A stretch of 64,000 nt of DNA from Chlorokybus atmophyticus (taxonomy: Eukaryota; Plantae; Mesostigma and Chlorokybus algae), in assembly GCA_009103225.1 (NCBI GenBank), contig RHPI01003516.1:86062-150061 (forward strand), written 5' to 3'. Both the position numbers and the translations under genes were made by a program. The notes beneath the pieces were generated by a model that saw only the letters and a program-made list of their open reading frames with translations, had not been told where the DNA came from and ran no database searches. Every line of letters starts with the position of its first letter. Within the stretch, counting starts at the first letter, position 1. Positions 1-36,723 of this stretch are shown one piece after another.

Positions 1-12
1 TTTCAACAAGCC

Positions 13-1020: not shown

Positions 1021-1362
1021 ATGTGCGCAGCGGCAACGCAAAGCGGTGTGGTTCGTGTGCCCGACAAGGCGAGGCAGCTGTTTGGAGTCATGGCTCTGAT
1101 CCGGGAGGGCAATGGGCCTTGGATGGAGTGTAAGATGCTAGTGGATTGCGGCGCGAACAGCAACTTTATAAGTCGTGAGGTTGCGCGTCGGCACAAGTGG
1201 CTGTCATGGGCAAATGCTGGTTCGGTGGCTCTAGCGGACGGCTATGCACCAGTAGGAGGAGCTTCTAAGCAAAGCAAAGAGCTTGAGATGCACGTGGGGA
1301 TGATGAAGGATCGCCTACGCTTTTGCTGCATCGAGGTGAACAATGGCTTTGATGGCATTTTA
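1021..1362 (+). pseudogene. Ty3/gypsy aspartic protease fragment, truncated at about 1362
   Basis: 'MLVDCGANSNFIS' catalytic motif and '...FDGIL' end. The sequence then switches to a G-family terminus. Confidence 0.8.
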
Positions 1363-1463
1363 CTGGTCAGTGACGCGCGGGTCGCCATGCTGGTAAGCCG
1401 GGCGAGGGTCTCGCTGTAGGCATGCCCGATGACGACTGGCATGCCCAAGCGATAGGCATGACA
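1363..1463 (-). mobile_element. About 100-bp remnant of a G-family A terminus inserted into the integrase of another G copy
   Basis: The reverse complement begins TGTCATGCC at 1463 and aligns with the A starts at 2451, 15851, 27120 and 29200. Confidence 0.75.
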
Positions 1464-2168
1464 AGTATGAGAAGAACATCTGGGACGACCACCTTCCGTG
1501 GGTGGCTCCTGGATACCGATTGTCAGAGCAGGCGGATCTGCGCGAGTACAGCCCATACCTGCTGATTGGGCATCCGCCATTGCTTCCGTTTCGTGCATAG
1601 CAGGAAGTAGACCGTGTGGTAAACAACCTCGACGATCTTAACTGGATGCACCACAACATTACCACACGCGCCACGCTGTTCGAGCATACCGTCCCGATGG
1701 CCTTCAACAACTTGCGCATCGCACAGCACCGCGACACCCTGCACTACAAGCGCGTGCGGAGCGGCTTCTATAAGGAGCACCAACGGCGGTTTTAAGCAGG
1801 GGACTTTGCCTACCGCATGGCAGCCACCAAAAACACGCTCGACACCTCCGTGGGCCGCACCGTCTACAAGGTACTCAAGGTGTACCCCACAGGAGTGGAC
1901 CTCCTTGTCAGAGTGGCGAGAGGTGAACTGCGCGCCATGTCACCTTCCTTACATAGCGGGCTTTGCGCACATCTAGCACCCTCGCCCCGCCCGCAGCACA
2001 CGCTGTAAACGCTGCGGCAGTGCCGACGACAACGCACTCATGATGCTCTGCAATGGCTGCTACAAGGGCCTGCATTGCTACTGTCTGGAGCCCCCATTAG
2101 ACGCGATACCCATGAAGGGGTACTAGTGCAATGATTGCTGCACCCACGGTCCTCCTCACCTGGGTTAA
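1464..2168 (+). pseudogene. G-family integrase C-terminus plus PHD finger, decayed
   Basis: Colinear with the 3' end of ORF 17164..21402 (WDDHLPWV..., FEHTVPMAFNNLRIAQHRDTL..., CGSADD..LMMLC.GC..G.HCYCL). Contains stops and frameshifts. Confidence 0.9.
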
Positions 2169-2213
2169 TAGCTGAGCTATGGAGCTGGAACCTCCCTAGA
2201 AGCTCAGGGGGGG

Positions 2214-2448
2214 GGGGCTTGTTGACTGTGTGGCCTACAGCACAGCATGTACACTAAGGAGGACACCGCCTCCACATGTCCGTGTGATTCAGCGACAGCG
2301 GAACTCCACCAAGCACTCCTCGCCATACAAGCTGGGTTATCTTTTATTTTATCTACATATTATGACATGTTGCAGCGACAGGGCTAGCAAGTGTAGCGGC
2401 CCGAGACAGTGTGACCCTCGACTCTCCTCGACCCGGCAGCTGTCATGC
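2214..2448 (+). repeat. G-family B repeat, internal copy B1
   Basis: Follows a G-run PPT and starts with the 14-bp r motif (GGGGCTTGTTGACT). Direct repeat of 3031-3270; homologous to 16879-17118 (minus). Confidence 0.85.
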
Positions 2449-2450
2449 CT

Positions 2451-3044
2451 ACTGCCCACGCATACCAGCTTTCATAGAGCATGGCTACATCGAAACCATC
2501 GCCCGGCCTACCAGCATACCATCGCGCACGTCACTGACCAGTAGCTAGGTCATGACTCCAGAGTAGCTCACGACCATAGCCTACATAGGCACCGCGCGTA
2601 GCTGTTTAGTTGTGAGTTCGGTTATAAGGTGTGTTCTATATTGAGTGACAATCGCTGTGGAAATAGCCTCGATATAACCGTTAGCTTGTGTTCTGAAACA
2701 GTCATGATTTGACCTGTATCAATAGTCAAAGTGTTCACCGGATCAGCTGGTGACACTGTGAGTGCGAAAGCTAAGAGCTTGTGAAACGACTTAAACTGCG
2801 AACACGCCATCCCGGTTACCAAGAACCCCCTCACTGTGTGAGAGCCGGTGCAAGCTCGTGTGTGCATCGTGCTTGTTATCGTTGTGAGCTTGGTGTGCCT
2901 GGTTGCAGTGTGTTTGTTGGCATTAGTCAGGGCATAATATCCACGTGTTGCTTGCCCATTCACCTCACTTAACAGTGTAACACATTTTTCGCTCATGCAA
3001 AGAGCTGTGTAAACAGCACTACCTATAGTAGTGGCTTGTTGACT
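2451..3044 (+). repeat. G-family A repeat, internal copy A2
   Basis: Starts TGTCATGCC, is closely similar to 29200-29792, and ends in r (GTGGCTTGTTGACT, 3031-3044). Confidence 0.85.
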
Positions 3045-3270
3045 GTGTGTCCTACAGCACAGCATGTACACTAAGGAGGACACCGCCTCCACATGTCCGT
3101 GTGACTCAGCGATAGCGGAGCAGCTCCACCAAGTACTCCTCGCCATACGAGCTGGGTTATCTTTTACCGCTGCTACATGTTATAACATGTTGCAGCGACA
3201 GGGCTAACAAGCATGTCTCTTCCTGTAGCGGCCCGAGACAGTGTGACCCTCGACTCTCCTCGCCCCGACA
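3031..3270 (+). repeat. G-family B repeat, terminal copy B2
   Basis: Direct repeat of B1 ending ...CCCGACA. It is followed directly by copia integrase-region sequence on the opposite strand. Confidence 0.8.
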
Positions 3271-10098: not shown

Positions 10099-10241
10099 CT
10101 TCATAGCTGAACCCCACAGTCCTCCTGCTTGTCCGCTGTATCTCTCACACTTTCAACTAACAGCTTTAACAACCTCACACACAGAGGAGAACACTCTCTC
10201 ACAGTAGCTAGCTCTACACACGTAGATGTGGGCCCATAATC

Positions 10242-13824: not shown

Positions 13825-15851
13825 GGACGGTCCAGGATGCGGGCCCGTCGTGCGGCCGTCTTGATCTCAATCTCTGCAAGGGGTCAGGTTAACGATCACC
13901 AACTCAGGCTCCTCCTCCTCTGCCCTATCGATGGCTGCAGATATAGACAAGCTAGTGACTATAGCGGGAGCGGCATGTGGAAAGACGGCTGCTGGACTAT
14001 GCAGCGACGCAGATGCTATGGTGCTGGCGAGCTCGCCATAGCCATCAATTCGATGCAGATCAGCAACAAACTTGCAGACATCGTGTGCTTCATGGTCCAT
14101 ATACCAAGCAGCAATGTGGAAAGAACTTATCTGATCAGTCTTTGTTCTTCAAAGCTTGATGTCACATCTTAAAATAGAACTTGATGATGAATTCGTCCAA
14201 CGAGGTGGTGCCAGCACGTCTGGAGAATCGCAGGGATGTGGTTGAGCTGGAAGACTCCATCTCGTAGTCATCGCTATCGGACGATTGTGGGAAAGCTCGA
14301 TGGCGAGGAGTAGATTGGAACGGTGGAAGCCGGAGACAGAATGCGAGCCTCTTCTACTGCGATTGCTGCTCTTGTCGCTGGTCCGCTCGTAGATGAGATC
14401 GGAGGTTGGGCTCCAGCTGCTAAGGTCACCCTCTATTAAAGAGAATGGGGTGTGTCACAGCCCATTCAACCACAAAAGACTTAGTGCTTTTATCATCGAT
14501 TTATGGTAATTTAACGTACCTTCCCGTTACATCCCCCCCACTTAAGAACGCTGACGTCCTCGGCAGCTGGCTCGCATCAGCTGGGGAAGCATCCCAGGGG
14601 TCTGATCAGGGTTGGTCACCGGCCCCACTGCCCAAGAACCGGCCAATGTAGGCCCATACCGATCAACGCGCGCATAGTGCGCCGCTGCCGGCCCCACAGG
14701 TCTCGTCGCCGCGATAGGTAGGTCGAGCCCTGCCGCACCGACTGAACTGGTCAGTTCGGCGCGACTGCCATTAGGCAAGTCGCGACCCATCGATAATGGC
14801 ACTTATAAAGTGACCATTTACGATGTTATTAGATGGAGAAACAATGACCGCGGAATTCGTGTGCAAGGCAGGAATCAAACCCGGGTCTCAAGCTCCGATG
14901 ACCAATGTCACAGCCCACTCGACCATAAAAGACTTGGTGCTTTTATGGTCGATTTGTGATAATCTAATTTACCTTCCCGTTACAGGGTGGGCCTGTTCAT
15001 ACTGCTAGTCTACAGGTGAAAGTGTATGCAAGGTAGAGTGCTTGTGCTCTACCGTCTGTCGTGATGCTGCTACCACTGACCACACTAGTGCTTGTGTGCA
15101 CACTATGTGACGACAGTGGCAACGCAAGCACGGAGATGTATCCCCAGGTACAGACTGCACTACATGATTCAGAATGCGACGCACTCACGGAAGCAAAGAG
15201 GATGACACTATGAGTAAACAAGCCACTACAATAGGTAGAGCTGTTTACAAAGTTCTTTGCAAGAGTGGATGATGTACTACACTGTGAAGTGAGGTGAATG
15301 AACAAGCAACTCAGAGATGCTTTGTTCTAATTGATGCAGCAAACACACCATCACCAAGCTTTCAACAATAGCAAGCACAGCGCACAAGAGAATACATTGT
15401 GTCTCACGTGGTAAGGCACTCCTTGGCAACCAGAGGCAATCCTTCCAGTTCAAGTCGCTTCACAAGCTCTTAAAGCCGGAGTCTCTGCTCTTAAAGTTCA
15501 CTCACAGGGTCATCAGCAAGTCTGATGACATGACATCTTACTTATATATGTTAAGTCATGACTGTGCAGTGCCACGCGAGCACCAGGCCAACGGTCACAT
15601 CGAGACCGTATGCTACCACGAAAATGTCTTAAGACCACATATAGCATTTGAGCTAATAATTGATTCCTAACTAATCAGCTACGCTTCCTACAGAGAGGTC
15701 TATAGAGTAGCCCTAGCTACATGCTACATGGAATACGAAGTAGCTAGCAGTGGACTGGGGCGCGCGCAGTCTTTATACTGGTAGCCCGGGCTTGGGGCTG
15801 GATGTAGGCATGCTCGAGGAGGACTAGCATGCGAGGGTATTTGGCATGACA
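13825..15851 (-). mobile_element. G-family copy 2: A end, leader and 5' gag, truncated
   Basis: Starts TGTCATGCC at 15851, has r at 15213-15226, and gag homology to 25336-26256. Interrupted by a TRIM. Confidence 0.85.
14453..14984 (-). mobile_element. TRIM (532 bp) inserted at the G gag start
   Basis: 79-bp repeats at 14453-14531 and 14906-14984, TSD GGGTG on both sides, PPT AGTGGGGGGA (minus, next to 14532) and PBS-like TGGTCATCGGAGC. Confidence 0.92.
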
Positions 15852-17163
15852 ACTGGATGCTGGTGTGCTTAGGGAGCATTATTTCTTTGTGCAGTATCCA
15901 AGTATCCCTGTCTTCCATTGTTTCCTTTGTATCATGGCAAGATTAAAAGCAACTAAGGTGACGTCCACACATTGCTTCTTGCCACAGGGGGTGATATCTC
16001 AAGGAGGTGCCATCCCAATCTCGGTGTCTGCCGGTACTCACCGCGTCTTTTACAATCAAAGACTCTTTTAAATGGTAAAGAGCAATGTATGGAGAAAATC
16101 TAAACACTGGCACATTGTATTACCTACTCGCTAACGAAAGGTTGGCAATGATGAGTCTTAAAGTTGAAGAGTATTTGCAAGCTTTTGCGCATAAGTTGTT
16201 TGAAAAGCTGCCGCGTGTGTGGCAGCGCTAACACCTGCAACACAAAGCGATGCTTGTATACTCCGCATCATTTGCATGTAGGCTCTTGAGCTGCCGGTTT
16301 AGTAATATTTAGTTTCAAGTAAGCACGGTTGTGGTGCCTAGTTTACAGCCTTCATCTTGCAGACAATGTCGGTAACAGCGGTGGTGAAGGCGTCCGTCGC
16401 AACCGGTGAAATCTTGCTTCACACTTCTTATACGAATTTGTTAGCCACAATATTAATCACACCGCGTATAGCATCAGCACAAGCACCACCACGGGTTATG
16501 CTGATCACTTTAGTAGTTCATGGGTCGACAGCAGGAGCATGGGGACCGTCCACATGCATACACGCACAGTTTTGCATCACCAACAAAAGAATTTGGCAAC
16601 AGCACAAACCGCTTATCCATGCTATGCGTTGAGCCGCACCCACCTTCGCCGTGTAGCGCCTCAGTTGCTTGAGCTCAACGCACAACCATTACATGCGCTA
16701 GACCTATAGCGCAGAACTGCAACTGGCGTGAAAAGTGATGACAGGACTGCAAACAGCGTTGTACATAGACGGCATCACAGCAATTGTGCACATGCACCAA
16801 TTACTGGTTGCCAGTGAGTACCACCCCGATCATTACCCCAAGCCTGCGCATTATTTATTCATGCAAACACAAGCACCTTGTCGTGCCTGTCATGGTCGAG
16901 GGCAACCTTGTCTCGGACAGGCTGCAGAGGAGTGCTAGTGCTGCACGCATGCTAGTGCCGTGCACTGCATTGGAGTCATGCAAGCAAAAGACAACCCCCC
17001 AATCGTGGGCATAGGCTTGAAGATGAGCCTACGCGGTGTTTAGTGCAGTGGACGAGCCGATGTTGCTCGCCACCTTTGTGTACAGACTGTGTCGTAGTGC
17101 ACACAGTCAACAAGCCACCCCCCCTGAGATTCTGGGGTAGCCCTCTGCTCCAGAACTCAGTTC

Positions 17164-20100
17164 CTACCGACTGTGTGGGGGACCGTTGATGCGGCAGTCA
17201 TCGCACCAGTACTCCCACAAGGGTACTGCGTCCAGTGGAGGGTCAAGGCAGTAGCAGTGCATGCCTTGATTACAGCCGTCGCATAACATCATCAATGGGT
17301 CGTCGTCGGCGCTGCCACACTTCTCGCATCGGGTGCTGCGCAGCGGACGCGGGTGCTGGATCTTGGTGAAGCCAGCAATGTAGGGGAGATGACAGGGCGC
17401 ACAGTTGACCATGTTGTCCTTCATGCGCTCGCCTCGTTGTCCCAACAGGTCCAGTACCCCTGTGGGGTGCACCTTCAATACCTTGTAAACAGCACGCCCG
17501 ACGGAGGTATCGAGGGTGTCGCGTGTAGACGCCATACGGTAGACGAAGTCTCCTGACTCGAAGCGGCGCTCCCGCTCCTTGTAGAAACCACTGCGCACAC
17601 GCTCGTAACGCAGCGTGTCGCGGTGCTGCGCGATGCGCAGGTTGTTGAAGGCCATGGGGACTGTGTGTTCGAACAGCGCACTGCGCACTGTCAGATCATA
17701 CAACATCTCGTCGGGGTTGTCGAGATTGTCCACCACTCTGTCGACCTCCTGCTGTGCGCGGAAAGGGAGCAATGGCTGCCTTCCGAACAGTAGATAGTAT
17801 GGGCTATACTCTCGCAGGGCTGCCTGCTTGGACAGCCGGTAGCCCATTGCTACCCATGGGAGGTGATCATCCCAGGTATTCTTCTCGTAGGCGAGGACGT
17901 ACTTGCGCAGTGCCTTCTTGATGGTCTGCACGGTACGCTCGGCGAGGCCGTCGGCCTGCGGGTGGTCGCGTGAGGTGCGACGGTGGTCGATGAAGCATCT
18001 GTCGATAAGCTTGTCGAAGGCTCCTCTGAACTCCGTACCCTGGTCGGTGATGACTTCAGCGCAGCTGCCGAAGCGTCCGAGTACATGGGAGAGGAAAGCC
18101 TGGGCTACTCCCTCACTGCTCTTGTCGGGCAGGGGCACCAGCTCCACCCACTTGGAGAAGTGCTCGATCATGACGAGGATGTAGCGGTTGCCTCGCGCTG
18201 AGGGCGCTAGGTCTCCGAGGATGTCCAGTCCCCAGCGGTAGAACAACCCGGAAATGGGAAGGGGATGCAAGGTGGCATTGCGCGTGTTGAGGCTGGCGCG
18301 AACCATGTCACACTGCTGACAGTTGCTGACGAACTCCCGCACCTGTCTGTGCACCCCATACCACCAGTACTGGGTCCTGACCAGGCTGACCGTGCGCTTG
18401 ACACCGAAGTGCCCGAGCTCGGTGTGAAGGGAGGAGATGATGCCTTCACGTGCAGCTGGTGTGGGGACCTCCTGATCTGCATCTTGTATCCGTCGATACA
18501 GCCTGTCGTTGGCCCAGCGGTAACGCTGAGTGCGTTGCCGGACGCGGTCCTTCTCGCGTGCGCTCATGCCTGCTGGAAGTTGTCCAGTCTGAAGCAGTGC
18601 GAGCGATGGCTCGTCCAGCCAGATGTCTTGTCGTGTGTCGGTGGGTGCCAGCTCCTCATCATCCACCTCAGGGTCGGCAGCGATTGCTTCTTCTGATAAA
18701 GGATCGGTGGTGGTGATGGCGGGCTCGAGAGCGGGCATGTCCCCGTCTGCTGCTGCCTCAGCGATCTGAGTCCTGCGTCCTGAGCGTAGCGCAGCGACAG
18801 CGAACATGGTGGCCACACCTGAAGGTGCAGCTGTAGGACCCAACTCATGTCGGGCGCCTGTGGCGTCGTTGGTGCTGAGGTGGGGGTTACGGCTGAGGCC
18901 ATCCGCATCCTGGTTGGCAAGGCCTGCGCGGTGTTCCACCTCGAAGTCGTACTCCTGGAGCAGCAGCGCCCATCGTGCTAACTTTCCTGTCAAGTGCTGG
19001 TTGTTCATTAGCCACTTGAGGGGTTGATGGTCAGTGACCAGTTGGAACTGCCGTCCAAACAGGAAGGGTCGGAAGAAGGAGATGGCCCACACTGCGGCGA
19101 GACACTCCCCTTCGTAACTGCTGTAGTTGGCCTCAGCACTGTTGTTGCTGCGGCTGGCGTACGACACTACGCGCTCCTTCTTGTTGTTGTCGTGCTGTAC
19201 GAGCACGGCCCCCATGCCGAGCTTGCTCCAGTCTGTGTGCAGGATGAACGACCTGGTGTAGTCAGGGCGTTGCAGAATGGGAGCTGTGGTGAGGCGGAGC
19301 TTCAGCTCCTGAAAGGCCTCCTGTTGTGCCTCCTTCCACAAGAACTCGGTGTCCTTCTTCAGTAGTTCGTTGAGAGGCCTTGCGATCTTGGCAAAGTCCT
19401 TGACAAACCGGCGGTAATAGTTGGCAAGGCCGAGGAAGGCCCGCAGCCGCGTGAGGTCTGTGGGGGCAGGGATAGCCACCAGTGCCTCCACTTTGGCCTG
19501 CTGTACGTACACACCATGGGGCACAATCATGTGTCCTAGGTAGGGTACCTTGTGGGTGAAGAAGGTGCACTTGTCAGGGTGCACCGTCATCCCGACTTCC
19601 TTCAGCCTCTGTAGCACCTCTTCGATGTGCTGGAGATGCTCCTCATTGCTGTGACTGAAGATGAGGATGTCGTCGATGTAGCAGCGCGCGAAGTCCAACC
19701 CCTTGAGGGCTTTGTCCATGACGCGCTGGAACTTGGCCGGAGCGTTCTTCAGTCCGAAGGGCATGACCTTCCACTGGTACAGCTGCCGGTTTCCCCAGAA
19801 GGAAGTCTTGTGCTTGTCCTCCTCCTTGATGGCGATCTGGTTGTACCCTTGGCGCATATCCAGGATACTAAAGACCGTGCAGTCTCCTACATCGTCAAAG
19901 ATGCCTTCTGCGGTAGGCATTGGATACCTGTCCTGCTTGGTCTTGTTGTTGAGGGGGCGATAGTCGCCACACATGCGCCGGTCTGTCCAGTTGCCTGCTG
20001 AATCTTTCTTCAGGGGCATGACGGTCGCGGCCGCAAAGTCCGATGTGGACTCCTCGATCAGGCCTGCATCTAGCAGCGCCTTGCACCTCTGTTCCACCAA

Positions 20101-21402
20101 GTCTTCTTCTAGCTTGGAGAGGCGGTACTGTCTTCTGAACACCGGTTCGGTGTCCACTAGTTCAATGTCCATCTGGTATGCTGAGCAGATGCCCAGCTCC
20201 TTCACACTGAAGCTGAATTGGCTCCTCCACTTGTTGAGGAGAGCCTCGAGTTGCTCTCGAGTCTGGCCTGTGGCCAGCGGTCCAATGGCGTGGGACCACG
20301 AGGTAGCGTTGGCGACCACTGGAATGTCTTCCACAGTGACTGCTGCCTGCTCCTCCATGTGGGCGGTCTCGAGGGCGGTGTGTGCTGCTTTGGTCTCTGA
20401 AAAGCGAGCAATCCACCCCCCAGCCAGGTGTTCGAGCTCCTGGAAGGACACATGGCGGTCCTGGAGAGCAAAGCACATTTCCAAGTACCACACCATGCTG
20501 TTCTGATCCATGGCGCGCCCCAACAACTGACATTGTTGACTGGTTGTCAGCGTGGAGCCTGTGATGCTGCTTGGAAAGAATCCCATAGCACGCTCGCGCT
20601 CGCGGGCATTGGGTTCTTCCAGCTGTCCAGTGTTGGAGTCCAACACCATGCCGTCGCCTGCATTGCGGAACGCGTAGGAGCCTGGATAGGATACAAGTGT
20701 GGGTAGCGCGCGGCGCGGCTGACCAGGCTGGTTGCACTGGTAGAAGTGGTGGTGGTCAAGGCGTGTGACTGGTTGCGCTGTGCGTCCAGGGTCCAGGATG
20801 TCATCGACGACGAGATTTCGTGGCCGATTGCTGTATAGGTACTCTGCCAGAAACAGGTCTTCCACAATGGCCAGGTTGGTCCACTTGGCGCGGACGCGGT
20901 GTGCACGAGATCCATGACGCGCGGCGTTGATTTTGAGAGGATGCCCCAGCAAGGAGCATACTTGCCGATAGGCCTTGGCGACGTGGTGCCGCTTGTCATC
21001 CTCGGAGTGCACATTCTCGATGATGTACCCCAAGGGTTTAGCGATCTGACTGATCTGTAGGAGTTTGATGACTCTCATTAGCTCCCAGAACAGCTGTGAG
21101 CGAGGATCCGAGAGCCCTTGGCCTCTGCCTGCCCTGGAGTGCCCTTGACACTCCCACCCTGCTATCAGCAGGTCAATGTTGCCGACTGCCTGCAGGTGAT
21201 CCTTGGTAATCCAGCGGATGTCCTGCGGTAGAGCCTTCTGGCTCCCTTGCAGTGCCGACAGCGGTAGCTGCTGCGGGTAGCGCTGGTGCAGCTGTCGTAA
21301 ATGATGGCTCAGAGCTTCCTGTGCATGAGGCATGAGGGTCAGGGTCACAGTAGAGGTACTTGGTGACTGTTGTTCCTGTGTTGAGGACAGCCGCAAGCCC
21401 AC
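17164..21402 (-). CDS. pol: G pol: C5 cytosine methyltransferase, RT, RNase H, integrase and PHD finger
   Basis: 1412-aa open frame with MTase motifs (GWECQ, ENV, RVRAKWTN, ERERAMGF), RT 'YIDDILIFS', RNase H 'LHTDWS...YEGECLA', IN HHCC plus D,D35E, and a C4HC3 PHD. Confidence 0.95.
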   Translation of the reverse strand: MGLRLSSTQEQQSPSTSTVTLTLMPHAQEALSHHLRQLHQRYPQQLPLSALQGSQKALPQDIRWITKDHLQAVGNIDLLIAGWECQGHSRAGRGQGLSDPRSQLFWELMRVIKLLQISQIAKPLGYIIENVHSEDDKRHHVAKAYRQVCSLLGHPLKINAARHGSRAHRVRAKWTNLAIVEDLFLAEYLYSNRPRNLVVDDILDPGRTAQPVTRLDHHHFYQCNQPGQPRRALPTLVSYPGSYAFRNAGDGMVLDSNTGQLEEPNARERERAMGFFPSSITGSTLTTSQQCQLLGRAMDQNSMVWYLEMCFALQDRHVSFQELEHLAGGWIARFSETKAAHTALETAHMEEQAAVTVEDIPVVANATSWSHAIGPLATGQTREQLEALLNKWRSQFSFSVKELGICSAYQMDIELVDTEPVFRRQYRLSKLEEDLVEQRCKALLDAGLIEESTSDFAAATVMPLKKDSAGNWTDRRMCGDYRPLNNKTKQDRYPMPTAEGIFDDVGDCTVFSILDMRQGYNQIAIKEEDKHKTSFWGNRQLYQWKVMPFGLKNAPAKFQRVMDKALKGLDFARCYIDDILIFSHSNEEHLQHIEEVLQRLKEVGMTVHPDKCTFFTHKVPYLGHMIVPHGVYVQQAKVEALVAIPAPTDLTRLRAFLGLANYYRRFVKDFAKIARPLNELLKKDTEFLWKEAQQEAFQELKLRLTTAPILQRPDYTRSFILHTDWSKLGMGAVLVQHDNNKKERVVSYASRSNNSAEANYSSYEGECLAAVWAISFFRPFLFGRQFQLVTDHQPLKWLMNNQHLTGKLARWALLLQEYDFEVEHRAGLANQDADGLSRNPHLSTNDATGARHELGPTAAPSGVATMFAVAALRSGRRTQIAEAAADGDMPALEPAITTTDPLSEEAIAADPEVDDEELAPTDTRQDIWLDEPSLALLQTGQLPAGMSAREKDRVRQRTQRYRWANDRLYRRIQDADQEVPTPAAREGIISSLHTELGHFGVKRTVSLVRTQYWWYGVHRQVREFVSNCQQCDMVRASLNTRNATLHPLPISGLFYRWGLDILGDLAPSARGNRYILVMIEHFSKWVELVPLPDKSSEGVAQAFLSHVLGRFGSCAEVITDQGTEFRGAFDKLIDRCFIDHRRTSRDHPQADGLAERTVQTIKKALRKYVLAYEKNTWDDHLPWVAMGYRLSKQAALREYSPYYLLFGRQPLLPFRAQQEVDRVVDNLDNPDEMLYDLTVRSALFEHTVPMAFNNLRIAQHRDTLRYERVRSGFYKERERRFESGDFVYRMASTRDTLDTSVGRAVYKVLKVHPTGVLDLLGQRGERMKDNMVNCAPCHLPYIAGFTKIQHPRPLRSTRCEKCGSADDDPLMMLCDGCNQGMHCYCLDPPLDAVPLWEYWCDDCRINGPPHSR

Positions 21403-24400
21403 TGCCTATGCCTCCGAACAGCTCCAGCACGGTGATGCCTTGTCGTCGGCGGAACATGTGGAACTCCACAACTCCCGTAGCTATGTGGTACTGATCCTGT
21501 ACTGTAGCCTGGTCTTTGTAGGCAGGGAAGTGTGCAGTGAGCTGAGGCCTGGTCAGCAGCATGTGTGCTGCTACTTGTGCGCTCCAGCGACGCTCGGATG
21601 GCTCCTGAAAGGCCACTTCTTTGGTGACAGTCTCCTGAGACTCATCGTACGGTGTAGGGGAGTCCTCTTCAGCGTTTAGGCTCGGGCTCGAGCTCGTTGC
21701 AGTTGTCCTTGGCTGCGTTCGGGCACGAGGCACACGTGAGCTTTTTGTAAGACTGTAGGTGGCTGCTGCAGCCGATCTTCGTTGCGAGCGGTCCTTGGCC
21801 ACCAGTTCGAGAGGTAGGAATCCCTGCTCCTCTCCATCGTCCTCATCCCAATGTGGTCGAAACCATGCCTGCTCAGTCCAGCAGTCCAGCCCCATGCCGA
21901 CAGGGAAGTTGCAGTCCTGTCCCAACAGTAGGTCAAAGGACCCGGCATCGGTGACCACACACCTTTGTACAATCTCGGTGCTGTGGGAAGGGTTTAGTCC
22001 GGTGAGGCGGATGCTCACAGCCTGCTTGGTAAGGCCGAGTACCTTGTCACGGTTGCCGGTTGCGGTGTCCAGCTGATAGGGACAGGGAAGCAGCTCAGCG
22101 CTGGTGATGCCGAGATCTCGTGCGAGGTAGCGCCCAATGATGACAGGCTGTGCTCCAGTGTCCAGCATCACGCATTTGGGTGCCCGCCCATTGACGGTCA
22201 CGTGCTTGCCTTGGTTGGCAATCATGGCTGCATTGGCGTTGATGCGCAGCCTCTTGAAGCGACGGAACCTCTTGCGTGGAGAGACTGTTGCTTTATTCTC
22301 ATCTGCGGGGCCTGACCGTAGGGCAGCCAGGGCTCCTCTGCCTGATGGATCTTGTGGGCCTCCTTGTCCTCGGCTTTGTCCAAACCGTCCTTGTCGCGGT
22401 TGCTGGTACACGCGTGGTGGCCTAGGCACTGGAGGTGCTGCTGCCACCTGTCCAAGTGGAGGTGCAGGAGGGTTGACCCTCTGTACAGCTGTTGTCATGC
22501 CAGGAGGAGTGGCCAGTGGCTGTGGCGGGAACCCTGGAGGACCTGGTGTTTGCGGGACTGCCTCTCGTGCAGCCTGCTCCTCTGCATAGGTCCATCGCAC
22601 AGCATGGGCTGCCTCTCTGACTAGTGTACCTTCCCATGTCGCCGTCGCATTGTTGTCCGCATCTATATAGCGATGGTTCTGAGGCATGGGCTGCAGGTAC
22701 ACTGCGCGTAGGAGCCGCGCTCTCATGTCGTGGGTGATGATGGGCACCCTGAGGATTACTGCCATGTAAGCATCCCATCTGCCGTTGACCACTCCCACTT
22801 CCAGCACTGTTATTGCTCGTGTGCGTACAGTGAGCTGGGTCTCTGGCTGTTGAACATGCTGCTCGTAAGCAGTGGCGATGCGCCTGCGCTGACGTCCTGC
22901 CTCCACCCCTGGCAAACTCAGTATCGCCTCCAGAGCTCCCTCCAGAGTGTCAGTGGCGGCGGAAGCCACTTCATCATAGGCTTGCCGTATGGAGCGAAGG
23001 AATGCGTCCACCCACGCTATTCTGGCGCCGAAAGCGAACAACGGGACTGCGGGATGGTTGGTAACCAGCCACGTCACTAACCGTGCGCGTGCCGCGTTGC
23101 CACTGTCTCGCATCCCAAGCATCTGCCGCAGTCCGATGCCTTCTTGCCGATGCAGCATGGTTGCTTGTCGCAACAGAGCAGTGCGTAGTTGTTGCTCTCC
23201 AACCAGTCCTGCTCCATCTCTTTGTGTACACCCTTGTGGTGTAAGGTAGCCCCTCCCTGGCTCCCTTTGGTCCTCAGGTAGATCCTCCACCAGCGCAGGC
23301 AGCAACGGGGCGATCACCCCCCTGGTTTGTTGAGCCAACGCCCTCGCTTGGTCAGAGTTGGTCCCGACGAAGAGCGGAGTGGTGCTGGAGGATGGACCAG
23401 CAGTTGGTGACTGAGGTATTGGTGCACGTGTAGCTTCAAGAGCTTGTTCACGTGCAGCAATGGCGGCAGCTTGATCCTGTCGCCAATGATATGCTTGTTC
23501 CAGTGCGTGGTAGCGCTGATGAAGACGAGCGGTTGTAGGAGGTCCGAGTGCTTCATCAGTGCCCAAAGGCAGGTCGGCTGCGTCGGCGATTCGCTGCTGG
23601 ATGGCGTCTCGGCGGTCCCGATACGTGTCCAACGGGCTGGGTTCAAAGGTGGTGGTTGGCATGCGTGCAGGCTGGCGCGGGGCGGTCTGCATGTTGTTGT
23701 GCAACGCCCAGAACAGCTGCAGAGCCAACTCCAACACTACAGGTGGGCTGTAGCTGATCAAGAACACCCTGTCACGCATCGGGGGTGCAGTGCCAGCAAG
23801 GATCTCATCTTCTAACTGGTGTTGAGTGAGTGCTGGAAGGGTGTGAACCTCTGGCAGCGGGAAGACGCGATCATCGCGGGCGACACGCGTGGTGCGCTCC
23901 CCCCCCCGACCGAAGGCGATGGTAGTGGGGTCTGCTCCGCGCAGGATGGTTTCCCATGCTCGTTCAGCTTGCTGACCAGTTGGGACAGCCTGAGTGACGT
24001 CGAGAGCGGGCAGAGTGGCTGCGCGCGTCGCTGCAGAGACAGCGGGCTCGACGATGGCCATTGTGGCAGTTGCGACGGTATCGGTCAGTGGTGCGAGAGT
24101 TGTCTCAACGCCCCCGGACAGAGGCGCTGCTGCAGTGGGAAGTGCACCGCCCACTGGTGCAGATTCGGTAGTGATGGCGGCTGCTGCCAGTGTGCTCACC
24201 AGCGTTGGCGTCACGGTGCCCACCGGTGTACCAGGTCGTGGTGCAACTGGAGTGGGTAATGCTGACGTTGATGGAGTCGATGTTGTAGCCGGTGTGGCTG
24301 TTGCTGCGGAGGCAGCACCACTGGTGGCTTCGGAGGAGGTGCCTGCTAATGTTGTTGCAGCTTCCCCTCGTGCTCGTCGTGATGGTTGCACGCGGGACGG

Positions 24401-24520
24401 AGTGTTCCTGTCTCTCTCGCGTTTTGCAGCCATCAGCGCCCATCGGGCCGTGTAGCAGGCGCGGTAGTCCTGCTCCTTGTCTTCCTCCAAGCGTGCCATG
24501 CGTGCCATTAGGGCTGCCAT
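21173..24520 (-). CDS. G polyprotein middle part: Ala/Thr/Pro-rich region, unknown domain, aspartic protease and MTase motif I
   Basis: 1115-aa ORF with 'VMLDTGAQPVIIG' and 'VLELFGGIGSG'. It joins the pol frame if the tandem CATGAGG duplication (21324-21337) is collapsed. Confidence 0.9.
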   Translation of the reverse strand: MAALMARMARLEEDKEQDYRACYTARWALMAAKRERDRNTPSRVQPSRRARGEAATTLAGTSSEATSGAASAATATPATTSTPSTSALPTPVAPRPGTPVGTVTPTLVSTLAAAAITTESAPVGGALPTAAAPLSGGVETTLAPLTDTVATATMAIVEPAVSAATRAATLPALDVTQAVPTGQQAERAWETILRGADPTTIAFGRGGERTTRVARDDRVFPLPEVHTLPALTQHQLEDEILAGTAPPMRDRVFLISYSPPVVLELALQLFWALHNNMQTAPRQPARMPTTTFEPSPLDTYRDRRDAIQQRIADAADLPLGTDEALGPPTTARLHQRYHALEQAYHWRQDQAAAIAAREQALEATRAPIPQSPTAGPSSSTTPLFVGTNSDQARALAQQTRGVIAPLLPALVEDLPEDQREPGRGYLTPQGCTQRDGAGLVGEQQLRTALLRQATMLHRQEGIGLRQMLGMRDSGNAARARLVTWLVTNHPAVPLFAFGARIAWVDAFLRSIRQAYDEVASAATDTLEGALEAILSLPGVEAGRQRRRIATAYEQHVQQPETQLTVRTRAITVLEVGVVNGRWDAYMAVILRVPIITHDMRARLLRAVYLQPMPQNHRYIDADNNATATWEGTLVREAAHAVRWTYAEEQAAREAVPQTPGPPGFPPQPLATPPGMTTAVQRVNPPAPPLGQVAAAPPVPRPPRVYQQPRQGRFGQSRGQGGPQDPSGRGALAALRSGPADENKATVSPRKRFRRFKRLRINANAAMIANQGKHVTVNGRAPKCVMLDTGAQPVIIGRYLARDLGITSAELLPCPYQLDTATGNRDKVLGLTKQAVSIRLTGLNPSHSTEIVQRCVVTDAGSFDLLLGQDCNFPVGMGLDCWTEQAWFRPHWDEDDGEEQGFLPLELVAKDRSQRRSAAAATYSLTKSSRVPRARTQPRTTATSSSPSLNAEEDSPTPYDESQETVTKEVAFQEPSERRWSAQVAAHMLLTRPQLTAHFPAYKDQATVQDQYHIATGVVEFHMFRRRQGITVLELFGGIGSGLAAVLNTGTTVTKYLYCDPDPHASCTGSSEPSFTTAAPALPAAATAVGTAREPEGSTAGHPLDYQGSPAGSRQH

Positions 24521-24697
24521 ATGGTCATCAGCTGGTGGGTTGGCTGAAGCCTTGGCGGCAACAGCAGCAGCGCGCGGACGTGTCTCTGGTCCCTTACGCT
24601 GAGGAGGTCTGTTCTTCCCCCTGTAGCCTTGCTCTTCCTTGCGAGCACTGGCATTGTTGTTGTTGTTACTGCCACCAGCGTTGTTGCTGTTGTGGGC

Positions 24698-26256
24698 TCA
24701 AGTGTTGTTGCTATTGTAGCCACTGAAGTGGTTGCCAGTGTGGCCCCCAGTGTTGTTGCTGTTGTAGCCACTGAAGTTGTTGGCAGGGTGGTTGTAGCTG
24801 TTGGCGGGCCTCAACTCTGGGAACTTGAGCCAGCAGACTGACTCCAGATGACCAATCTTGTGACAGTGGTCGCAAACCAAAGTTGAGTATTCTTCGGTGC
24901 ACTCCTTTTGGTAGTGCCCATGCCGTCCACAGCGATGACACAGCACAGGGGCAGCAAGTGCAGCATGAGCTGACCGTTTCCCTTTGTCGCGTGCTGGTGG
25001 AGCGTCCCGGCCACGGTCGCGGCGAGGAGGCTCAGTTGTCGTGCTGACTACAGGCCGTACGGCTCTGCGGTTGGTGTCCAGCACTGCCTTCTCATACACC
25101 AAGCGCTTGTGGATGGCTTGTGCAGTCTCGAAGGCTTCTTTGAGAGTGTAGCCAAGGGGCCTGCTGTAGTTCAGAGTCAGGCGTGTCGACTCGCTCAGAG
25201 CAGCATCCAACTCATTGACGTATATTACTACAGCAGCCTCCTCACTGACAATCTTGTAGTCAGTGTCTTTCAGCAGACCTTCCAGTCTGGAGTATAAGCG
25301 GAGGGGATCCTCATTGGGCTTGCGTCGGAAGCGTCTCAACTCCTCAACCTTGCTGGTGGTCTGAGGAGGGAAGGTACGAGGAGGTAAGGTACGAGGAGGT
25401 AAGGTAGGCGCAGGGCAGCGTACAGGTCCTTGAGTGGAGAATCAGAGATGGCAGCACCTACGGTGATGGCTGGTGCGCGCAGTGCTACTGACCCGAGGGT
25501 GAAAGCGCTGCCTCCTGCACGAGAGCCAGGTGTTGCTGGAGGTAGAGGAGTACCCCACTCTGCGGCTGCCGCTTGCTGTACAGCTCTTTGTTCCTCAATG
25601 ATGATGGCAGAACGGTCAAGGATGCGGACTCGACGTGTGGCCTCCTTGGACTCAACTTCTGCAGGGGTCAAGTTGACAAGTACCAACTCTGGTTCCTCCT
25701 CCTCTGCCTGCTTGAGAGCGGCAGCTATGGTCAAGCCTGTTACTGCAACTGAAGTGGCAGGTGGAATGACACCTGCTGGACGGTGCAGGGATGCAGATGC
25801 TATGGTGCTGGCAAGCTCGCCATAGCCGTCTACTCGATGCAGTTCAGCAACGGACTTCCAGACATCGTGTGCTTCATGATCAAGATACTGAGCAGCAATG
25901 TGGAAAGAGATCTCATCTGACCAGTCTTTGTTCTTCAGTGCTTGCTGCCGCATCTTGGAGTGCCGCAACTTGATGATGAACTCATCCAGCGAGGTGGTGC
26001 CGGCACGTCCGGAAAAGCGCAGGGATGTGGTTGAACTGGAAGATTCCATCTCGTTGTCGTCGCTGTCCGATGATAGTGGAGAAGCTGGAGGACGAGGAGT
26101 AGAGTGGAGCGGGGTGAAGCTGGAGATGGAGCGCGAGCCTCTGCTGCTGCGGTCGATGCTTCCGTCACTGGTCCGCTCGTAAGTGAGATTGGTGGTTGGG
26201 CTCCAACTGCTGAGGTCACCCTCGTCTATTGGGGAGAACGGGGTGGGCCTGCTCAT
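24698..26256 (-). pseudogene. gag: G gag with two CCHC zinc knuckles
   Basis: ORFs 25336-26256 and 24698-25339 are split by a 15-bp tandem expansion at 25371-25400. Knuckles are CHRCGRHGHYQKEC and CDHCHKIGHLESVC. One in-frame TGA (24698-24700) separates this from the next ORF. Confidence 0.88.
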
Positions 26257-28235
26257 ACAGCTGGTCCAGAGGTGAAAGGGTAGAGTGCTTGTGCTCTACC
26301 GTCTATCCTGATGCTGTTACCACCCAACACACTAGTGCTTGTGCGCACTGTGTGATGACAATGATAACGAATGCCCAGCGATGTATTCCTGGGTGCAGAC
26401 TGAACTATCTGATGCAGATTGCAACACACTCACTTGTGCAAAGAGGGTGACACTGTAAGTCAACAAGCCACTACGATAGGTAGTGCTGTGGACACAGTTC
26501 TTTGCATGAGTGGATAGAATGATACACTGTTAAGTGAGGTGAATGAGTGTGCAACACGTGGATACAACACCCTGACTACTGAAACAACACACCACCGTCA
26601 AGCTCACAGCAATGGCAGGCACAGCGCACAAGAGTATGCACCGTGTCTCACGCAGTAAGGGAATTCTTGGCAACCGGGGCAGCGTGCTTCCAGTTCAAGT
26701 CGCTTCACAAGCTCTTTAGAAACAGAGTCTTTACTTCTTGGTACTCCTAGTACTCACAGTACTCACTTACAGTGTCACCAGCCAGTCTGGTGACGTGACT
26801 TCCTACTTATACATGTCAAATCATGACTGTGCAGTGCCACACGGGCACTAGGCCAACGGTCACATCGAGGCCTCATGCTATTTCGGAAATCTCCTAAGAC
26901 TTGATATAGCACATGTGTTCTTAACAGACTTGCAACTGATCAGCTACGCGCGGTCCCTACAGACAGGTCTATAAAGTAGCCCTAGCTACAGGCTACATGA
27001 GTGATACAGTAGCTAGCAGTAGGCTGGGGCTCGCGCGGTCTTTATGCTGGTAGCCCTGGCGTGGGGCTGGGTGTAGGCATGCTTGAGAAGAACTGGCATG
27101 CGAGGGTAGATGGCATGACAACCTTCCTGTGTGCACACAAGTACAGCCTTGCCATATGCATCAAGTAGTCAAAGAAGCCGAGTAGGCAGACAAATCGACA
27201 ATGCAGTCGACGAGAGCACGCTCACCCAACCATTGCAAGACGCCATGACATGACAAATGCTAACCACTCCCTGCTGCAACCCAAGCTGCAATATGGAGTG
27301 GATTCCCTTTCGCATCCATGTCTTTCCCAACCACAACAGTGACAACAACTAACAATTGATTTTGCAAGGCAAGGTAGGTGCAAGTGCACATATGTCAAGT
27401 ATTAGTTGTTGAACTGTGTGCGCTGGGGTGGGGGAGGTGGGGGGTATGTGCTTGCGCACGAGGCATGCATTAGCCATATGTTCACATGATTTATTGCCTT
27501 TTTTGCGACAGCTGCCGCACATGCCGTGTCGCTACACACACATTTTGTGATTGCGACTATTGTTGTTATTGTCGACATACATCTTCTGCTCTGCGGCACA
27601 AGCTGGAAACAAAGAAGCGCTCTCATGGGCTTATTGCCGCAGCCGGGTTGGCAACTGCTATGCATACCGTAGTAAGTGGCAATCAGCGGGCCAGAACAGG
27701 TGGCCACAATCAAATCAGCTGCGCCAGGATGCCAAACAACCGGGCTGCAGGTGTTCGCACACCGGCGGACTTTCATACCATTGCGTGCATTGTTTTGCTG
27801 CTATACACATGTTACATACATATGTTGTCATTCTTTGTGTTTTCGTTCAAGACATGCAGTGCTCAGATCTGCTAAACAGAGCAATCAGTTTGACTTCATC
27901 AATCGCAGTAAGCTCAGTCGGACTGCACAATCTACACCAAATGTATTGCCTTCATATATGTGCATGTATGCACGGCTTACCAAACAGCATGGCATGCTGT
28001 GGCATCAACTGTGCCCAAACTTTTGGCATGTCTTTCCAGAACTCAACGTTGCATCAATTCTTTTTGGTGCACATTGCTTTGTTGACCAAGGTACTGTGCA
28101 CCATAACGTGCACACACTACCTGATTGGCAGTGTGCTGATTGAGCACGTGTGCCAACATCATGCACACCAGATGTAAGCCCATCTCAGGCCTGCGCCCCT
28201 ATTCTTTCCTGGAGCACCTCATGTTACTTCAACCA

Positions 28236-29199: not shown

Positions 29200-31576
29200 T
29201 GTCATGCTTAGTGCCCACACATACCAGCCTTCATCGAGCATGTCTACATCAAAACCATTGCCCGGCCTACCAACATACCAACGCGCGCGCGTCCCTGACT
29301 ACTAGCTAGGTCATGACTCCAGAGTAGCTCACGACCATAGCCTACATAGGCACCGCGCGTAGCTATTCAGTTGTAAGTTCTGTTCTATATCAAGTGACAA
29401 TTGCTGTGGAAATAGCCTTGATATGACCGTTAGCTTATGTTCTGAACGGTCATGATTTGACTTGTTTAAGTAGTCATTGTGTTCACCGGGTCGGCTGGTG
29501 ACACTGTGAGTGAGAAAGCTAAGAGCTTGTGAAACGACTTGAGCTGCAAACACGCCATCCCGGATACCAAGAACCCCCTCACTGTGTGAGAGCCCGTGCA
29601 TGCTCGTGCGTGCATCGTGCTTTTCATCGCTGTGACCTTGGTGTGCCGGGTTGCAGTGTGTTTGTTGGCATCAGTCAGGGCATAGTACCCACGTGTTGCT
29701 TGCTCATTCACCTCAATTAACAGTATAACACATTTTTTGCTCATGCAGAGAACTGTGTAAACAGCACTACCTATAGTAGTGGCTTGTTGACTCACAGTGT
29801 CACCCTCTTTGCTATGGTGGGTGCGTTGCATTCTGCATCAGATAAGTGCAGTCTGTATCTGAGGACACGTCCCCGTGCATTCGTTATCACTATCATTACA
29901 TAGTGCGCACATAAGCACTAGTGTGGTGAGTAGTAGCGGCATTGAGACAGGCGGTAGAGCACAAACGCTCTACCCTGCATACACTTTCACCTTTGGACTA
30001 GCTGTATGAGCAGGCCCACCCCGTTCTCTTCAATGGACGAGGGTGACCTCAGCAGCTGGAGCCCAACCTCCAACCTCACCTACGAGCGGACCAGCGACAG
30101 GAGCAATGATCGTAGCAGCGGAGGCTTACGTGCTGTCTCCGACTTCATTCCGTTCCTGTCCACTTCACGGCATCGAGCTTCCCCACTCTCGTCCGACAGT
30201 GACGACTACGAGATGTAGTCTTTTAGCTCAACCACGTCCCTGCGTTTCTCCAACCGTGCTTGCACTACCTCGCTGGATGAATTCATCATCAAGTTGTACT
30301 CCAAGATGCGACAGCAGGCTCTGAAGAACAAAGACTGGTCAGATGGGATCTCTTTTCACATTGCCGCTCAGTATCTGTGTGACGGTGCTCGTGCCTTGTC
30401 ACCTGTGAGTTGGTCCAATCCACAACCCTCTCACCAAGACACGGTATTCACACCGGAACCTTGCCCCCTCTGCCAAGCACACACGCGCGCCCCGCCACTC
30501 GCGTACGCACGCGCATGCGCTCGAAGCTACACACCGACTTGTGTAGCGCCCTGGATCGTCACACAAGCAAGCACACACCAGTGGACACACGCTAGCAACC
30601 CCTTCTAGCCACCACCAAGCTTGCACACAAGAAACTAGGGAGCTAAAGGTTGTATTGCAAATTGTAGATTGTCACTTTTATACCTACCAGTCTGCACATG
30701 CTACTGTAGACGATTCTAGCGCTAGACGGAACAAGAAGCTAAGGTAGTTGCAGAATCTTGTATTACACTTCTAGAGCTTTCCAACGCACCAAAGATCTCA
30801 CAATTTGCTGCTCATATCAGTTATACTACTTGGCGCCAGGCCCTTCCAGAAATCTGGTCGAGCCCTTCTCGACTGGCCCTCCGTTTTTGGCACCTTCCGG
30901 ACTGGTCTTGGGGCCCCGGTCGATATCCGCGGCAAATCTCATAACTCGCCGATATCCGCCACAAGTCATAAAAAAACATGTATCTTACAAATAAGGCCTA
31001 AAACGGCCATGAAAATCATAAAATTTGGCCTTGACTGTTACAATCTGGATCATGAAGCACATGATGTTTGAAAGTCTGTTGCTGAACTGCATCGAGTAGA
31101 TGGCTATGGCGAGCTCGCCAATACCATAGCATCTGCGTCACTGTACAGACCAGCAGCGTCTTTCCACCTACCACTTCCGTTGCAGTCACCGGGTTATCCA
31201 TAGCGGCAGCTATTGACAGAGCAGAGGAGGAGGAACCTGAGTTAGCGATCGTCGACCTGACCCCTGCAAAGATTGAGATCAAGACGGCCGCGCGACGGGC
31301 CCAGATTCTGGACCGAATCTGTTGCCATCCTTGAAGAACTGCAGCCGTTGATGTGGGCACACCCCTACCTATGGCAACACCTAGCTCTCGTGCGGGAGCC
31401 AGTGCTTTCACCCTCGGGTCAGTGGCACTGCGCGCACCAGCCATCACTGTAGGTGCTGCCATTTCTGACTCTCCACTCAAGGATCTATACGCTGCACTTC
31501 GTCGCACCTTCCCACCGCAGACCACTAGCAAAGTGGAGGAGTTGAGGCGGTTCCGGCGCAAGCCCAACGAGGACCC
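29200..31576 (+). mobile_element. G-family copy 3: A end, leader and gag 5' half, cut by copia A'
   Basis: Starts TGTCATGCT, has r at 29779-29792, and gag 'MSRPTPFS' at 30006. Confidence 0.88.
30378..31042. mobile_element. Solo LTR (665 bp) inserted in G gag
   Basis: TGTGAC...GTTACA ends with TSD ATCTG at 30373-30377 and 31043-31047. The gag sequence resumes seamlessly after it. Confidence 0.88.

Positions 31577-36723
<5,147 letters not shown>

Follow-up and report, generated by a model that had tools for sequence, protein, structure and literature searches.

A Ty3/gypsy-type retrotransposon family with split terminal repeats and a DDE integrase in the green alga Chlorokybus atmophyticus

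Textbook retrotransposons with long terminal repeats (LTRs), and likewise retroviruses, regenerate their ends by way of two identical LTRs, and split direct repeats are treated as the hallmark of tyrosine-recombinase elements. A retrotransposon on contig RHPI01003516.1 of Chlorokybus atmophyticus (assembly GCA_009103225.1) raises the question of how an element with a DDE integrase and no LTR pair could restore its ends. It lies within a stretch of 64,000 nucleotides (positions 86,062 to 150,061 of the forward strand; hereafter the window, whose own numbering is used throughout) and reads A-int-B, where A and B are its 5' and 3' terminal regions and int is the internal part. Comparison with the other copies in the window and with relatives elsewhere shows that the usual integrated unit of its family is A1-gag/pol-PPT-B1-(2 nt)-A2-B2, with a polypurine tract (PPT) before B1, ends of the form TGTCATG...CACGACA, a 4-bp target-site duplication (TSD) and a DDE integrase. 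The copy at 16879-27120 (the focal copy) is best read as a member of this Ty3/gypsy-type family with split repeats and, most likely, as a primary short product that was inserted as A-int-B; we hold this reading tentatively, at a little less than an even chance.

The boundaries of the focal copy (Table 1) are marked by the duplication ACCT, just as a preliminary description of this DNA had it, and its termini, which read TGTCGTGCC...GGCATGACA on the plus strand, are of the TG...CA kind and inverted at 8 of 9 positions, one fewer than the nine that had been claimed. TG...CA ends and a short TSD are typical of Ty3/gypsy elements, as are a PPT before the 3' repeat and a primer-binding site (PBS), here a predicted self-complementary one, after the 5' repeat; the identical LTR pair expected of this class is absent. 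BLAST comparison of A with B returned, in agreement with the earlier account of a 663-bp A and a 240-bp B that are otherwise unrelated, a single common sequence, a 14-mer (r) that lies at the inner border of each region. With up to one mismatch r occurs at six sites in the window, namely three borders between A and the leader, two between the PPT and B, and one A/B joint; with up to two mismatches there are seven matches, where chance would give 0.73. Eight occurrences of the terminal 9-mer TGTCRTGCC were counted, against 1.3 expected, and five of them lie at predicted element ends; the terminus-like 9-mers at 11645 and 51445, where neither A nor B homology is present, were taken as chance matches. 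The A region is 77% identical to 15213-15851 and about 76% identical to 29521-29792 and 2773-3044, while the first 49 nt of B match the B copies at 2216-2262 and 3031-3079. The G-run of the PPT precedes B in all relatives as well. The two flanks (15852-16878 and 27121-29199), searched separately for an empty site, have no second copy in the window. The terminal heptamer recurs just inside each end of the focal copy (16879-16910 and 27080-27120), as CATGACA..CACGACA in B and as GCATGCC twice in A, and in the metagenome family described below GTCACGACA is present twice near the ends; such repeats may represent two integrase-binding sites per end.

To characterize the coding region each open reading frame (ORF) was searched singly as a protein query, and domains were assigned from matches to Pfam and to solved structures. 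The pol order protease-RT-RNase H-integrase, with a reverse transcriptase (RT) of the Ty3 type, is that of the Ty3/gypsy class, and the Gag-Pol of Ty3 (7q5b) is the best solved-structure match (E=1.4e-100). The integrase is a D,D35E enzyme with an H2C2 zinc domain, whose best retroviral integrase match is that of prototype foamy virus (PFV; E=2e-20); in an alignment of 12 relatives its residues D1060 and D1120 are invariant and E1155 is nearly so. A methylase domain is located upstream of the RT in the same pol ORF, and in relatives the region from the protease to the PHD finger forms a single ORF of about 2,350 aa. In the focal copy the coding region is broken at three points, by a frame change in gag, an in-frame stop between gag and pol, and a frame change in pol, indicating that this copy is damaged, though far less so than its metagenomic relatives.

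These domains bear directly on the view that the element belongs to the DIRS/Ngaro/PAT kind and integrates by a tyrosine recombinase, a view suggested by the split repeats, since PAT and Ngaro elements are diagnosed by the order A1-B1A2-B2 (PMC4157794). No match to Phage_integrase or to any other recombinase was detected in any ORF at E<=1, and no tyrosine recombinase was found among the Pfam domains of 72 relatives. Together with the complete D,D35E integrase, the 4-bp TSDs, the TG...CA ends and an RT that groups with Ty3, this refutes such an identity, whose probability we regard as practically nil, and upholds the original assignment to the Ty3/gypsy type with a DDE integrase.

The other copies in the window show that the layout of the focal copy is one of two forms. 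Its own 3' end reads PPT-r-B, as previously described; the 3' end at 2214, for which the same layout had been given, instead runs on as B-GC-A-r-B. This second, older copy (1466-3270), whose 5' part was cut off by a nested insertion, has a B1 and a B2 that are 86% identical over 247 bp and an A2 that is 88.6% identical to the A at 29200-29792, and r, which is common to A2 and B2, is present once at the A2|B2 joint (3031-3044). The reading B-GC-A-B indicates that the family does carry terminal repeats, but in a split form (A...B-A-B), so that the statement that there is no LTR pair is right for the focal copy and wrong for the family. The outer B2 of this copy is followed by GC at 3271-3272, the same dinucleotide as the spacer between B1 and A2 (2439-2440), which may be due to chance (1/16) or may be a trace of end formation. 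At the 5' side, the three ends at 27120, 15851 and 29200 had been said to read A-r-leader-gag without B, and indeed all three r borders were found and no B lies upstream of any of them.

To place these copies in a wider context we carried out a scan of JGI metagenome contigs with the alignment, which yielded 80 loci, and compared each locus with itself; further loci came from an ENA contig (L002) and from Closterium sp. NIES-54 (L084 and L085). Protein relatives of the window pol are found in Klebsormidium nitens (P0015, 40% identity), Closterium, Tetraselmis, Haematococcus and many uncultured organisms, with the best being 48-52% identical. About 20 distinct insertions show pol-PPT-B1-(2 nt)-A2-B2, with an A1 matching A2 wherever upstream sequence exists, and about nine are of the short form, in which pol-PPT-B is followed by unrelated flank; A-int-B-A-B is the commonest integrated form among the relatives. 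The ENA contig holds a young long form with an intact 2,352-aa ORF, in which A1 and A2, as well as B1 and B2, are 100% identical, and both Closterium loci have the long-form layout too. As the preliminary description anticipated, ordinary identical LTRs are lacking: neither a simple LTR pair nor a B upstream of A1 was seen among the metagenome insertions, and the arrangement A-B-A-int-B was not encountered among at least 11 insertions with upstream sequence. In the single K. nitens locus compared (L003) pol lies at the contig end, and no repeat is present 3' of it.

Despite a protein identity of only about 45%, A starts with TGTCATG... and B ends with ...CACGACA across the window, the metagenome loci, L002 and Closterium. 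The internal joint consists of CA, two nucleotides (GC, AC, AT, TA or CT) and TG, and the form ...GACA NN TGTCA... is shared by the window and Closterium alike. Without exception, in 9 metagenome loci, in L002 and in Closterium, A2 and B2 meet exactly, the last base before the PBS directly adjoining the one that follows the PPT. The 14-mer r is absent from the relatives and specific to the family of the window. In two cases the surroundings of a long form deserve mention. The young copy in L002 (8595-19185) has additional units of a related subfamily on either side, 98% identical to one another: to its left an A-B, to its right the start of an A. An inverted A fragment follows, and the B|A joints there have small indels. 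It looks as if the copy had inserted into an older one, or been arranged in tandem with it, at its own end junction. In L017 (14140-14700) the B2 of a long form is apparently reduced to about 30 bp, with the terminal motif and a perfect CCAC TSD kept.

TSDs were counted only at boundaries defined by repeats or by homology, a scan by motif alone being spurious with about 0.3 pairs expected per locus; the chance of each perfect 4-bp match is 1/256. Perfect duplications lie outside A1 and B2 in five of eight long forms (GGTC, TGAC, TGTG, ATAA and TCTC), and the motif scan adds two more in relatives (CTTT and CCAC). Three short forms also have a perfect TSD (L040, TACA; L069/70, AATT; L079, AGAC), with the homology to A beginning exactly at the duplication, which brings the number of perfect 4-bp TSDs in relatives to ten, besides the ACCT of the window. 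Six other insertions show PPT-B directly followed by unrelated flank. The 4-bp TSDs at A starts and B ends, as the preliminary description also expected, indicate that the integrated unit is bounded by the A start and the B end and was inserted by a DDE-type reaction.

This recurrence speaks against two simpler accounts of the focal copy. The first takes it for an ordinary LTR retrotransposon in which both LTRs are partly lost, or for a chimera of two elements with different LTRs whose flanks happen to match over 4 bp. Apart from the a priori expectation of LTR pairs in Ty3/gypsy elements nothing speaks for it, whereas the A...B layout and the terminal motifs recur in dozens of independent insertions in several hosts with repeated perfect TSDs; moreover, the Ty1/copia elements of the window show normal LTR pairs, an internal control that the repeat search detects such pairs. 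We consider this account scarcely credible, the recurrence across independent insertions refuting it for practical purposes. According to the second, the locus is really B1-A2-B2 and was collapsed to A-int-B in assembly, as a young insertion would have identical 240-bp B copies that are open to short-read mis-threading. The window, however, resolves many nested repeats of 94-98% identity, which suggests a long-read assembly, and short forms with TSD recur in independent assemblies of old, diverged copies, so that we regard a collapse as very unlikely.

How such an element might be copied is suggested by a pair of complementary segments. The predicted PBS of the focal copy is a perfect 15-nt complement of a segment in the middle of A (S; Table 1). 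In the copy at 29200, GGTGACACTGTGAGT pairs with ACTCACAGTGTCACC, with one change on each side that compensates the other, so that the pairing is kept. L002 has a 24-nt S/PBS pair unrelated in sequence to that of the window, and the metagenome family has a third pair, of 15 nt, again with a compensated variant. In all, an S/PBS match of 11-24 nt is present in eight of twelve 5' ends, with four unrelated sequences, and none of 200 shuffles reaches this. In RNAs predicted to start at the mid-A segment the S/PBS pairing forms the closing stem of the predicted fold (z=-1.8 and -7.1). This complementarity points to an RNA start in mid-A, which would divide A into U3 and R/U5, and A would then behave like a Tf1-type LTR. 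A comparable arrangement of mid-repeat segment and PBS is known from the self-priming elements of the Tf1/sushi/Tcn1 type (PMC6317226). In such elements the primer arises when RNase H cleaves the RNA that has folded back.

From this anatomy we infer a course of RNA and cDNA synthesis. The RNA would start at the mid-A segment, and its first ~15 nt would fold back on the PBS and prime the minus strand. If the RNA spans mid-A1 to A2 and primes itself at the PBS, strong-stop DNA could land only on A2. As the PPT lies just before B and the PBS just after A, the LTR made by the RT would be B-A, in line with the earlier proposal for the cDNA; the predicted B|A junction is present in the window (2436-2449) and in about 20 relatives. 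Plus-strand synthesis from the PPT would thus produce B-xx-A, a circular permutation of U3-R-U5 in which the integrase ends are abutted inside. Since the outer ends of a B-A cDNA are neither TG...CA nor inverted, the integrase would have to cut internally rather than trim two bases. Internal cutting has precedents: the PFV integrase cleaves the palindrome at which the two LTRs of a 2-LTR circle meet (PMC1180852), and the HIV-1 enzyme does the same in vitro (PMC1905944). On a linear cDNA or a 1-LTR circle, the sole usable pair of ends would be the left A start and the first B end to its right, yielding A-int-B.

The long form would need one extra A|B joint. That joint has the exact sequence of joined cDNA ends, which points to a circular cDNA or one of more than unit length. 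In the family of the window r would be located at both cDNA ends and is present once at the A2|B2 joint, as a terminal redundancy used for end-joining would leave it; the relatives lack r, so it is not essential. The long form alone keeps a downstream A2, which would serve as the 3' R, and B2, absent after A1, may well take part in 3'-end formation by supplying the downstream part of the signal. On that condition the short form would be a dead end. More generally, these elements could constitute a clade with a circularly permuted LTR, in which each integration is an internal DDE cut from a circular or more-than-unit cDNA, a counterpart of bacterial copy-out-paste-in and an independent, DDE-based invention of split repeats. 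We offer this wider proposal with considerable doubt, as a possibility.

A special case of the favoured reading, which requires a circular substrate and was put forward in the preliminary description, makes the focal copy the product of a 1-LTR circle that the integrase opened at its single palindromic B|A junction and inserted. By analogy the idea is plausible: in the B-xx-A junction two inverted ends abut, as in the junctions that the PFV and HIV-1 enzymes can cut, and the exact A2|B2 joint of the long forms, along with the 14-mer redundancy, would fit an end-joining into circles. Internal cutting of a linear cDNA fits equally well, and the same logic applied to 2-LTR circles predicts the form A-B-A-int-B, which was not seen; we therefore think it unlikely that this special case applies. 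One contig has a bearing on circles by its name: L001 (ENA ERZ25067493 ctg159469_5x_c, 1-18357), which appears to be marked as circular, is made up of 2.2 tandem copies of an 8,262-bp unit that show no difference from one another; each unit is one element, whose 2,358-aa pol is intact, with one B-A junction. Either the DNA is really tandem or circular, or the assembler made it so, as assemblers do with any repeat-bounded element; we treated it as an assembly product of this sort and did not use it as evidence of circles.

A different origin of the short form is suggested by the general behaviour of repeats. Closely spaced direct repeats favour repeat-mediated deletion, and a loss between B1 and B2 would be analogous to the formation of solo LTRs. 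The focal copy might thus have been inserted as the long form A1-int-B1-A2-B2 and have lost A2-B afterwards, by unequal recombination or single-strand annealing between the B copies, with the TSD kept. The long form is in the majority among the relatives and is also that of the other window copy; the B copies are direct repeats of 180-250 bp that lie merely 300-660 bp apart; the short forms keep their TSDs; and the internally shortened B2 in the long form of L017 points to decay of that very region. On the other hand, many long forms keep both B copies down to 80-94% identity, which implies that the deletion is not fast, and the focal short copy, with its very long open frames, is comparatively young. 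Furthermore, about 1 Mb of loci, a sample biased to those that contain pol, showed no solo A-B apart from the long forms, although recombination between A1 and A2 should leave such units. Such a deletion has, in our judgement, a substantial probability that is nonetheless clearly short of even.

Several observations weigh against the favoured reading, in which the short form is a primary product of integration. The short form could equally arise after integration by recombination between B1 and B2 with the TSD kept, and age cannot tell the two origins apart, since the metagenome copies are all old and degenerate; the longest stop-free stretch of pol fails to separate short from long forms. The focal copy is the only one in the window with both ends. 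The tests for a TSD were imperfect in three of the eight long forms (two match at 3/4 positions, one at 0/4), and L004 has no TSD. Four of the twelve 5' ends (L028, L031, L075 and the window copy at 15851) show no significant S/PBS match, where the pairing may have been lost through decay. Where transcription starts, where the poly(A) site lies and which forms the cDNA takes are likewise predictions from sequence. Two attempts at a full account were also rejected. Derivation of the long form from standard two-jump reverse transcription failed, as it yields B-A...B-A and then the short form. A 2-LTR circle has two equivalent junctions and, opened at random, should yield A-B-A-int-B no less often than A-int-B-A-B; yet the former is unseen, which suggests that a directional step is missing from the model.

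Table 1. Features of the focal copy and of other family members in the window (coordinates are positions in the window)
Feature	Coordinates	Strand	Basis and remarks
Whole element, short form A-int-B	16879..27120	-	10,242 bp; TSD and 8/9 inverted TG...CA termini; BLAST of element against window
TSD, left copy, ACCT (plus strand)	16875..16878	.	direct reading; same as 27121-27124
TSD, right copy, ACCT	27121..27124	.	direct reading
A, 5' terminal region, 663 bp	26458..27120	-	begins TGTCATGCC; closes with r at 26458-26471
S, mid-A segment, GGTGACACTGTAAGT	26765..26779	-	complementary to PBS; predicted 5' end of genomic RNA
Predicted self-priming PBS, ACTTACAGTGTCACC	26446..26460	-	3-nt overlap with the end of A; pairs perfectly over 15 nt with 26765-26779
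gag region with CCHC zinc knuckle (24893-24940)	24698..26256	-	1 frame change inside
pol region: protease, C5-DNA methylase, RT, RNase H, integrase, PHD	17164..24520	-	Pfam matches; 1 frame change inside
Aspartic protease	21914..22201	-	PF13650, PF13975
C5 cytosine DNA-methyltransferase domain, DNMT3-like	20851..21243	-	PF00145 E=3.8e-10; DNMT3A/3B/3C and M.HaeIII matches
RT and RNase H, Ty3/gypsy type	18949..19986	-	PF00078, PF17917, PF17919; Ty3 RT 4ol8 E=1e-77
Integrase: H2C2 zinc domain and rve core, D,D35E	17962..18459	-	PF17921, PF00665
PHD finger, C-terminus of pol	17194..17328	-	PF00628 E=1.4e-6; UHRF1/UHRF2-type PHD matches
PPT, TCTCAGGGGGG on element strand	17119..17129	-	direct reading
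14-mer r (GTGGCTTGTTGACT), 3' copy	17105..17118	-	directly after PPT
B, 3' terminal region, 240 bp	16879..17118	-	opens with 14-mer r; closes ...GGCACGACA
Second, older copy, 3' part, long form	1466..3270	+	pol 3' end, PPT, B1 2214-2438, GC 2439-2440, A2 2441-3044, B2 3031-3270
A start (5' end) of another copy	1361..1463	-	nested in pol of 1466-3270 copy
Truncated copy, A (15213-15851)-r-leader-gag	13827..15851	-	no B upstream
Truncated copy, A (29200-29792)-r-leader-gag	29200..31576	+	no B upstream; S/PBS pair intact
Diverged internal fragment of further copy	59196..62032	-	72% identity

The window is rich in other mobile elements. Ty1/copia elements, recognized by RVT_2, rve and gag_pre-integrs, occupy 5133-9938 (+), 31575-36727 (-) and 47085-51867 (-); their LTRs form ordinary pairs and are 94-95% identical. 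Helitron-like ORFs (Helitron_like_N, PIF1 helicase; 39954-43538, +) are located in an AT-rich island with a GC content of about 0.37-0.40, which is bracketed at 38170-39100 and 44920-45700 by arrays with a 12-nt period that are mutual reverse complements (GTGATAGTGATA-like and TCACTATCACTA-like). At the left edge of the window the ORF 13-759 (+), with Retrotrans_gag and Ty3_capsid matches, is part of another gypsy-type element. The region 55170-62698, around the diverged family fragment, contains dense long inverted and direct repeats of 96-98% identity.

The combination of split repeats with a DDE integrase, TG...CA ends and 4-bp TSDs suggests that the strategy by which an element rebuilds its ends is separable from the enzyme by which it integrates. 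The family is widespread in green algae, being present in Klebsormidium, Closterium, uncultured relatives and the host of the window, and it offers a natural case of abutted LTR-type ends as a heritable part of an element, which bears on whether circle junctions are genuine integrase substrates. Annotation tools based on LTR pairs are likely to miss such elements or to misplace their boundaries. The methylase and PHD modules are of interest for the interaction of the element with host chromatin.

The claim that the architecture was undescribed for an element with a DDE integrase does not stand: the legend to Figure 4c of de Mendoza et al. (2018) notes that KnitGypsy-Dnmt3 of Klebsormidium nitens combines a DIRS repeat structure with Gypsy domains, and for the dinoflagellate DIRS elements of the same paper a legend gives the order A-coding region-B-A-B (PMC5890265). 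The second window copy and about 20 relatives have this A-coding-B-A-B structure, and the focal copy reads A-coding-B. Like KnitGypsy-Dnmt3, the window element has a Gypsy pol with a DNMT3-like methylase inside the pol ORF, and the K. nitens protein is 40% identical to its pol. The focal copy fits the Gypsy-DNMT3 kind reported from Klebsormidium, which has so far scarcely been described, and is a new member of it in another host. It differs in its host and in sharing only this level of identity, and the 2018 legend gives no TSD, termini, junction, PBS or short form (PMC5890265). Literature searches on split direct repeats with an integrase and on KnitGypsy returned no description beyond that legend. 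Judged by the literature open to searching, the points that are new comprise the TSDs, the termini and junction with their conservation, the exact joining of A to B, the self-priming pair, the recurrence of the short form and the 14-mer peculiar to this family; the value of the present analysis lies in this anatomical detail and in the statement of an unsolved mechanism rather than in a first sighting.

Among tyrosine-recombinase elements, Ngaro, PAT and TOC share with this family the split repeats A1-int-B1-A2-B2, in which the internal B1A2 is a joined copy of both ends (PMC4157794, PMC7192593). They encode a tyrosine recombinase, whereas the present family has a DDE integrase, 4-bp TSDs, TG...CA ends and a Ty3-type RT; of the traits of the DIRS/PAT/Ngaro group it shows the split repeats, at the level of the family, and neither a recombinase ORF nor TSD-free integration. 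We know of no report of DDE-type 4-bp duplications or TG...CA ends in Ngaro, PAT or TOC. In DIRS-1 the internal complementary region, an internal copy of the abutted termini that rebuilds the ends from a shorter transcript, is essential by experiment (PMC7192593). By analogy, the internal B1-xx-A2 can be viewed as the functional counterpart of this region and of the B1A2 of PAT and Ngaro. DIRS-1 itself is set apart from this family, as far as shown, by terminal repeats that are inverted, by a tyrosine recombinase and by cDNA intermediates that are single-stranded.

With Tf1/Tf2, sushi and the plant Tcn1 elements the family has in common a predicted RNA start complementary to the PBS beside the 5' repeat and the lack of a tRNA-type PBS (PMC6317226). 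Those elements possess ordinary identical LTR pairs and usually a chromodomain, in place of the split repeats and PHD finger seen here. Yeast Ty3 is the closest relative of the RT/RNase H with a solved structure (7q5b, 4ol8) and has the same domain order as the focal copy, but it differs in its LTR pairs and tRNA primer and in having neither a methylase nor a PHD finger. The 2-LTR circle junctions of PFV and HIV-1 resemble the B-xx-A of the family in presenting abutted CA-xx-TG, and internal cutting by the integrase there gives linear processed DNA (PMC1180852, PMC1905944). In retroviruses such cleavage is a side path or debated, whereas the present family inherits its abutted ends as part of the element. 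In the copy-out-paste-in pathway of the bacterial IS3, IS30 and IS256 elements, too, the substrate of a DDE enzyme is a junction in which inverted ends abut with a few bases between them; these are bacterial, DNA-only elements, and their likeness to the present family is one of analogy alone. Taken together, these comparisons portray an element that appears to be Ty3/gypsy in its enzymes and integration, Tf1 in its priming, and PAT/Ngaro/DIRS in the storage of its ends.

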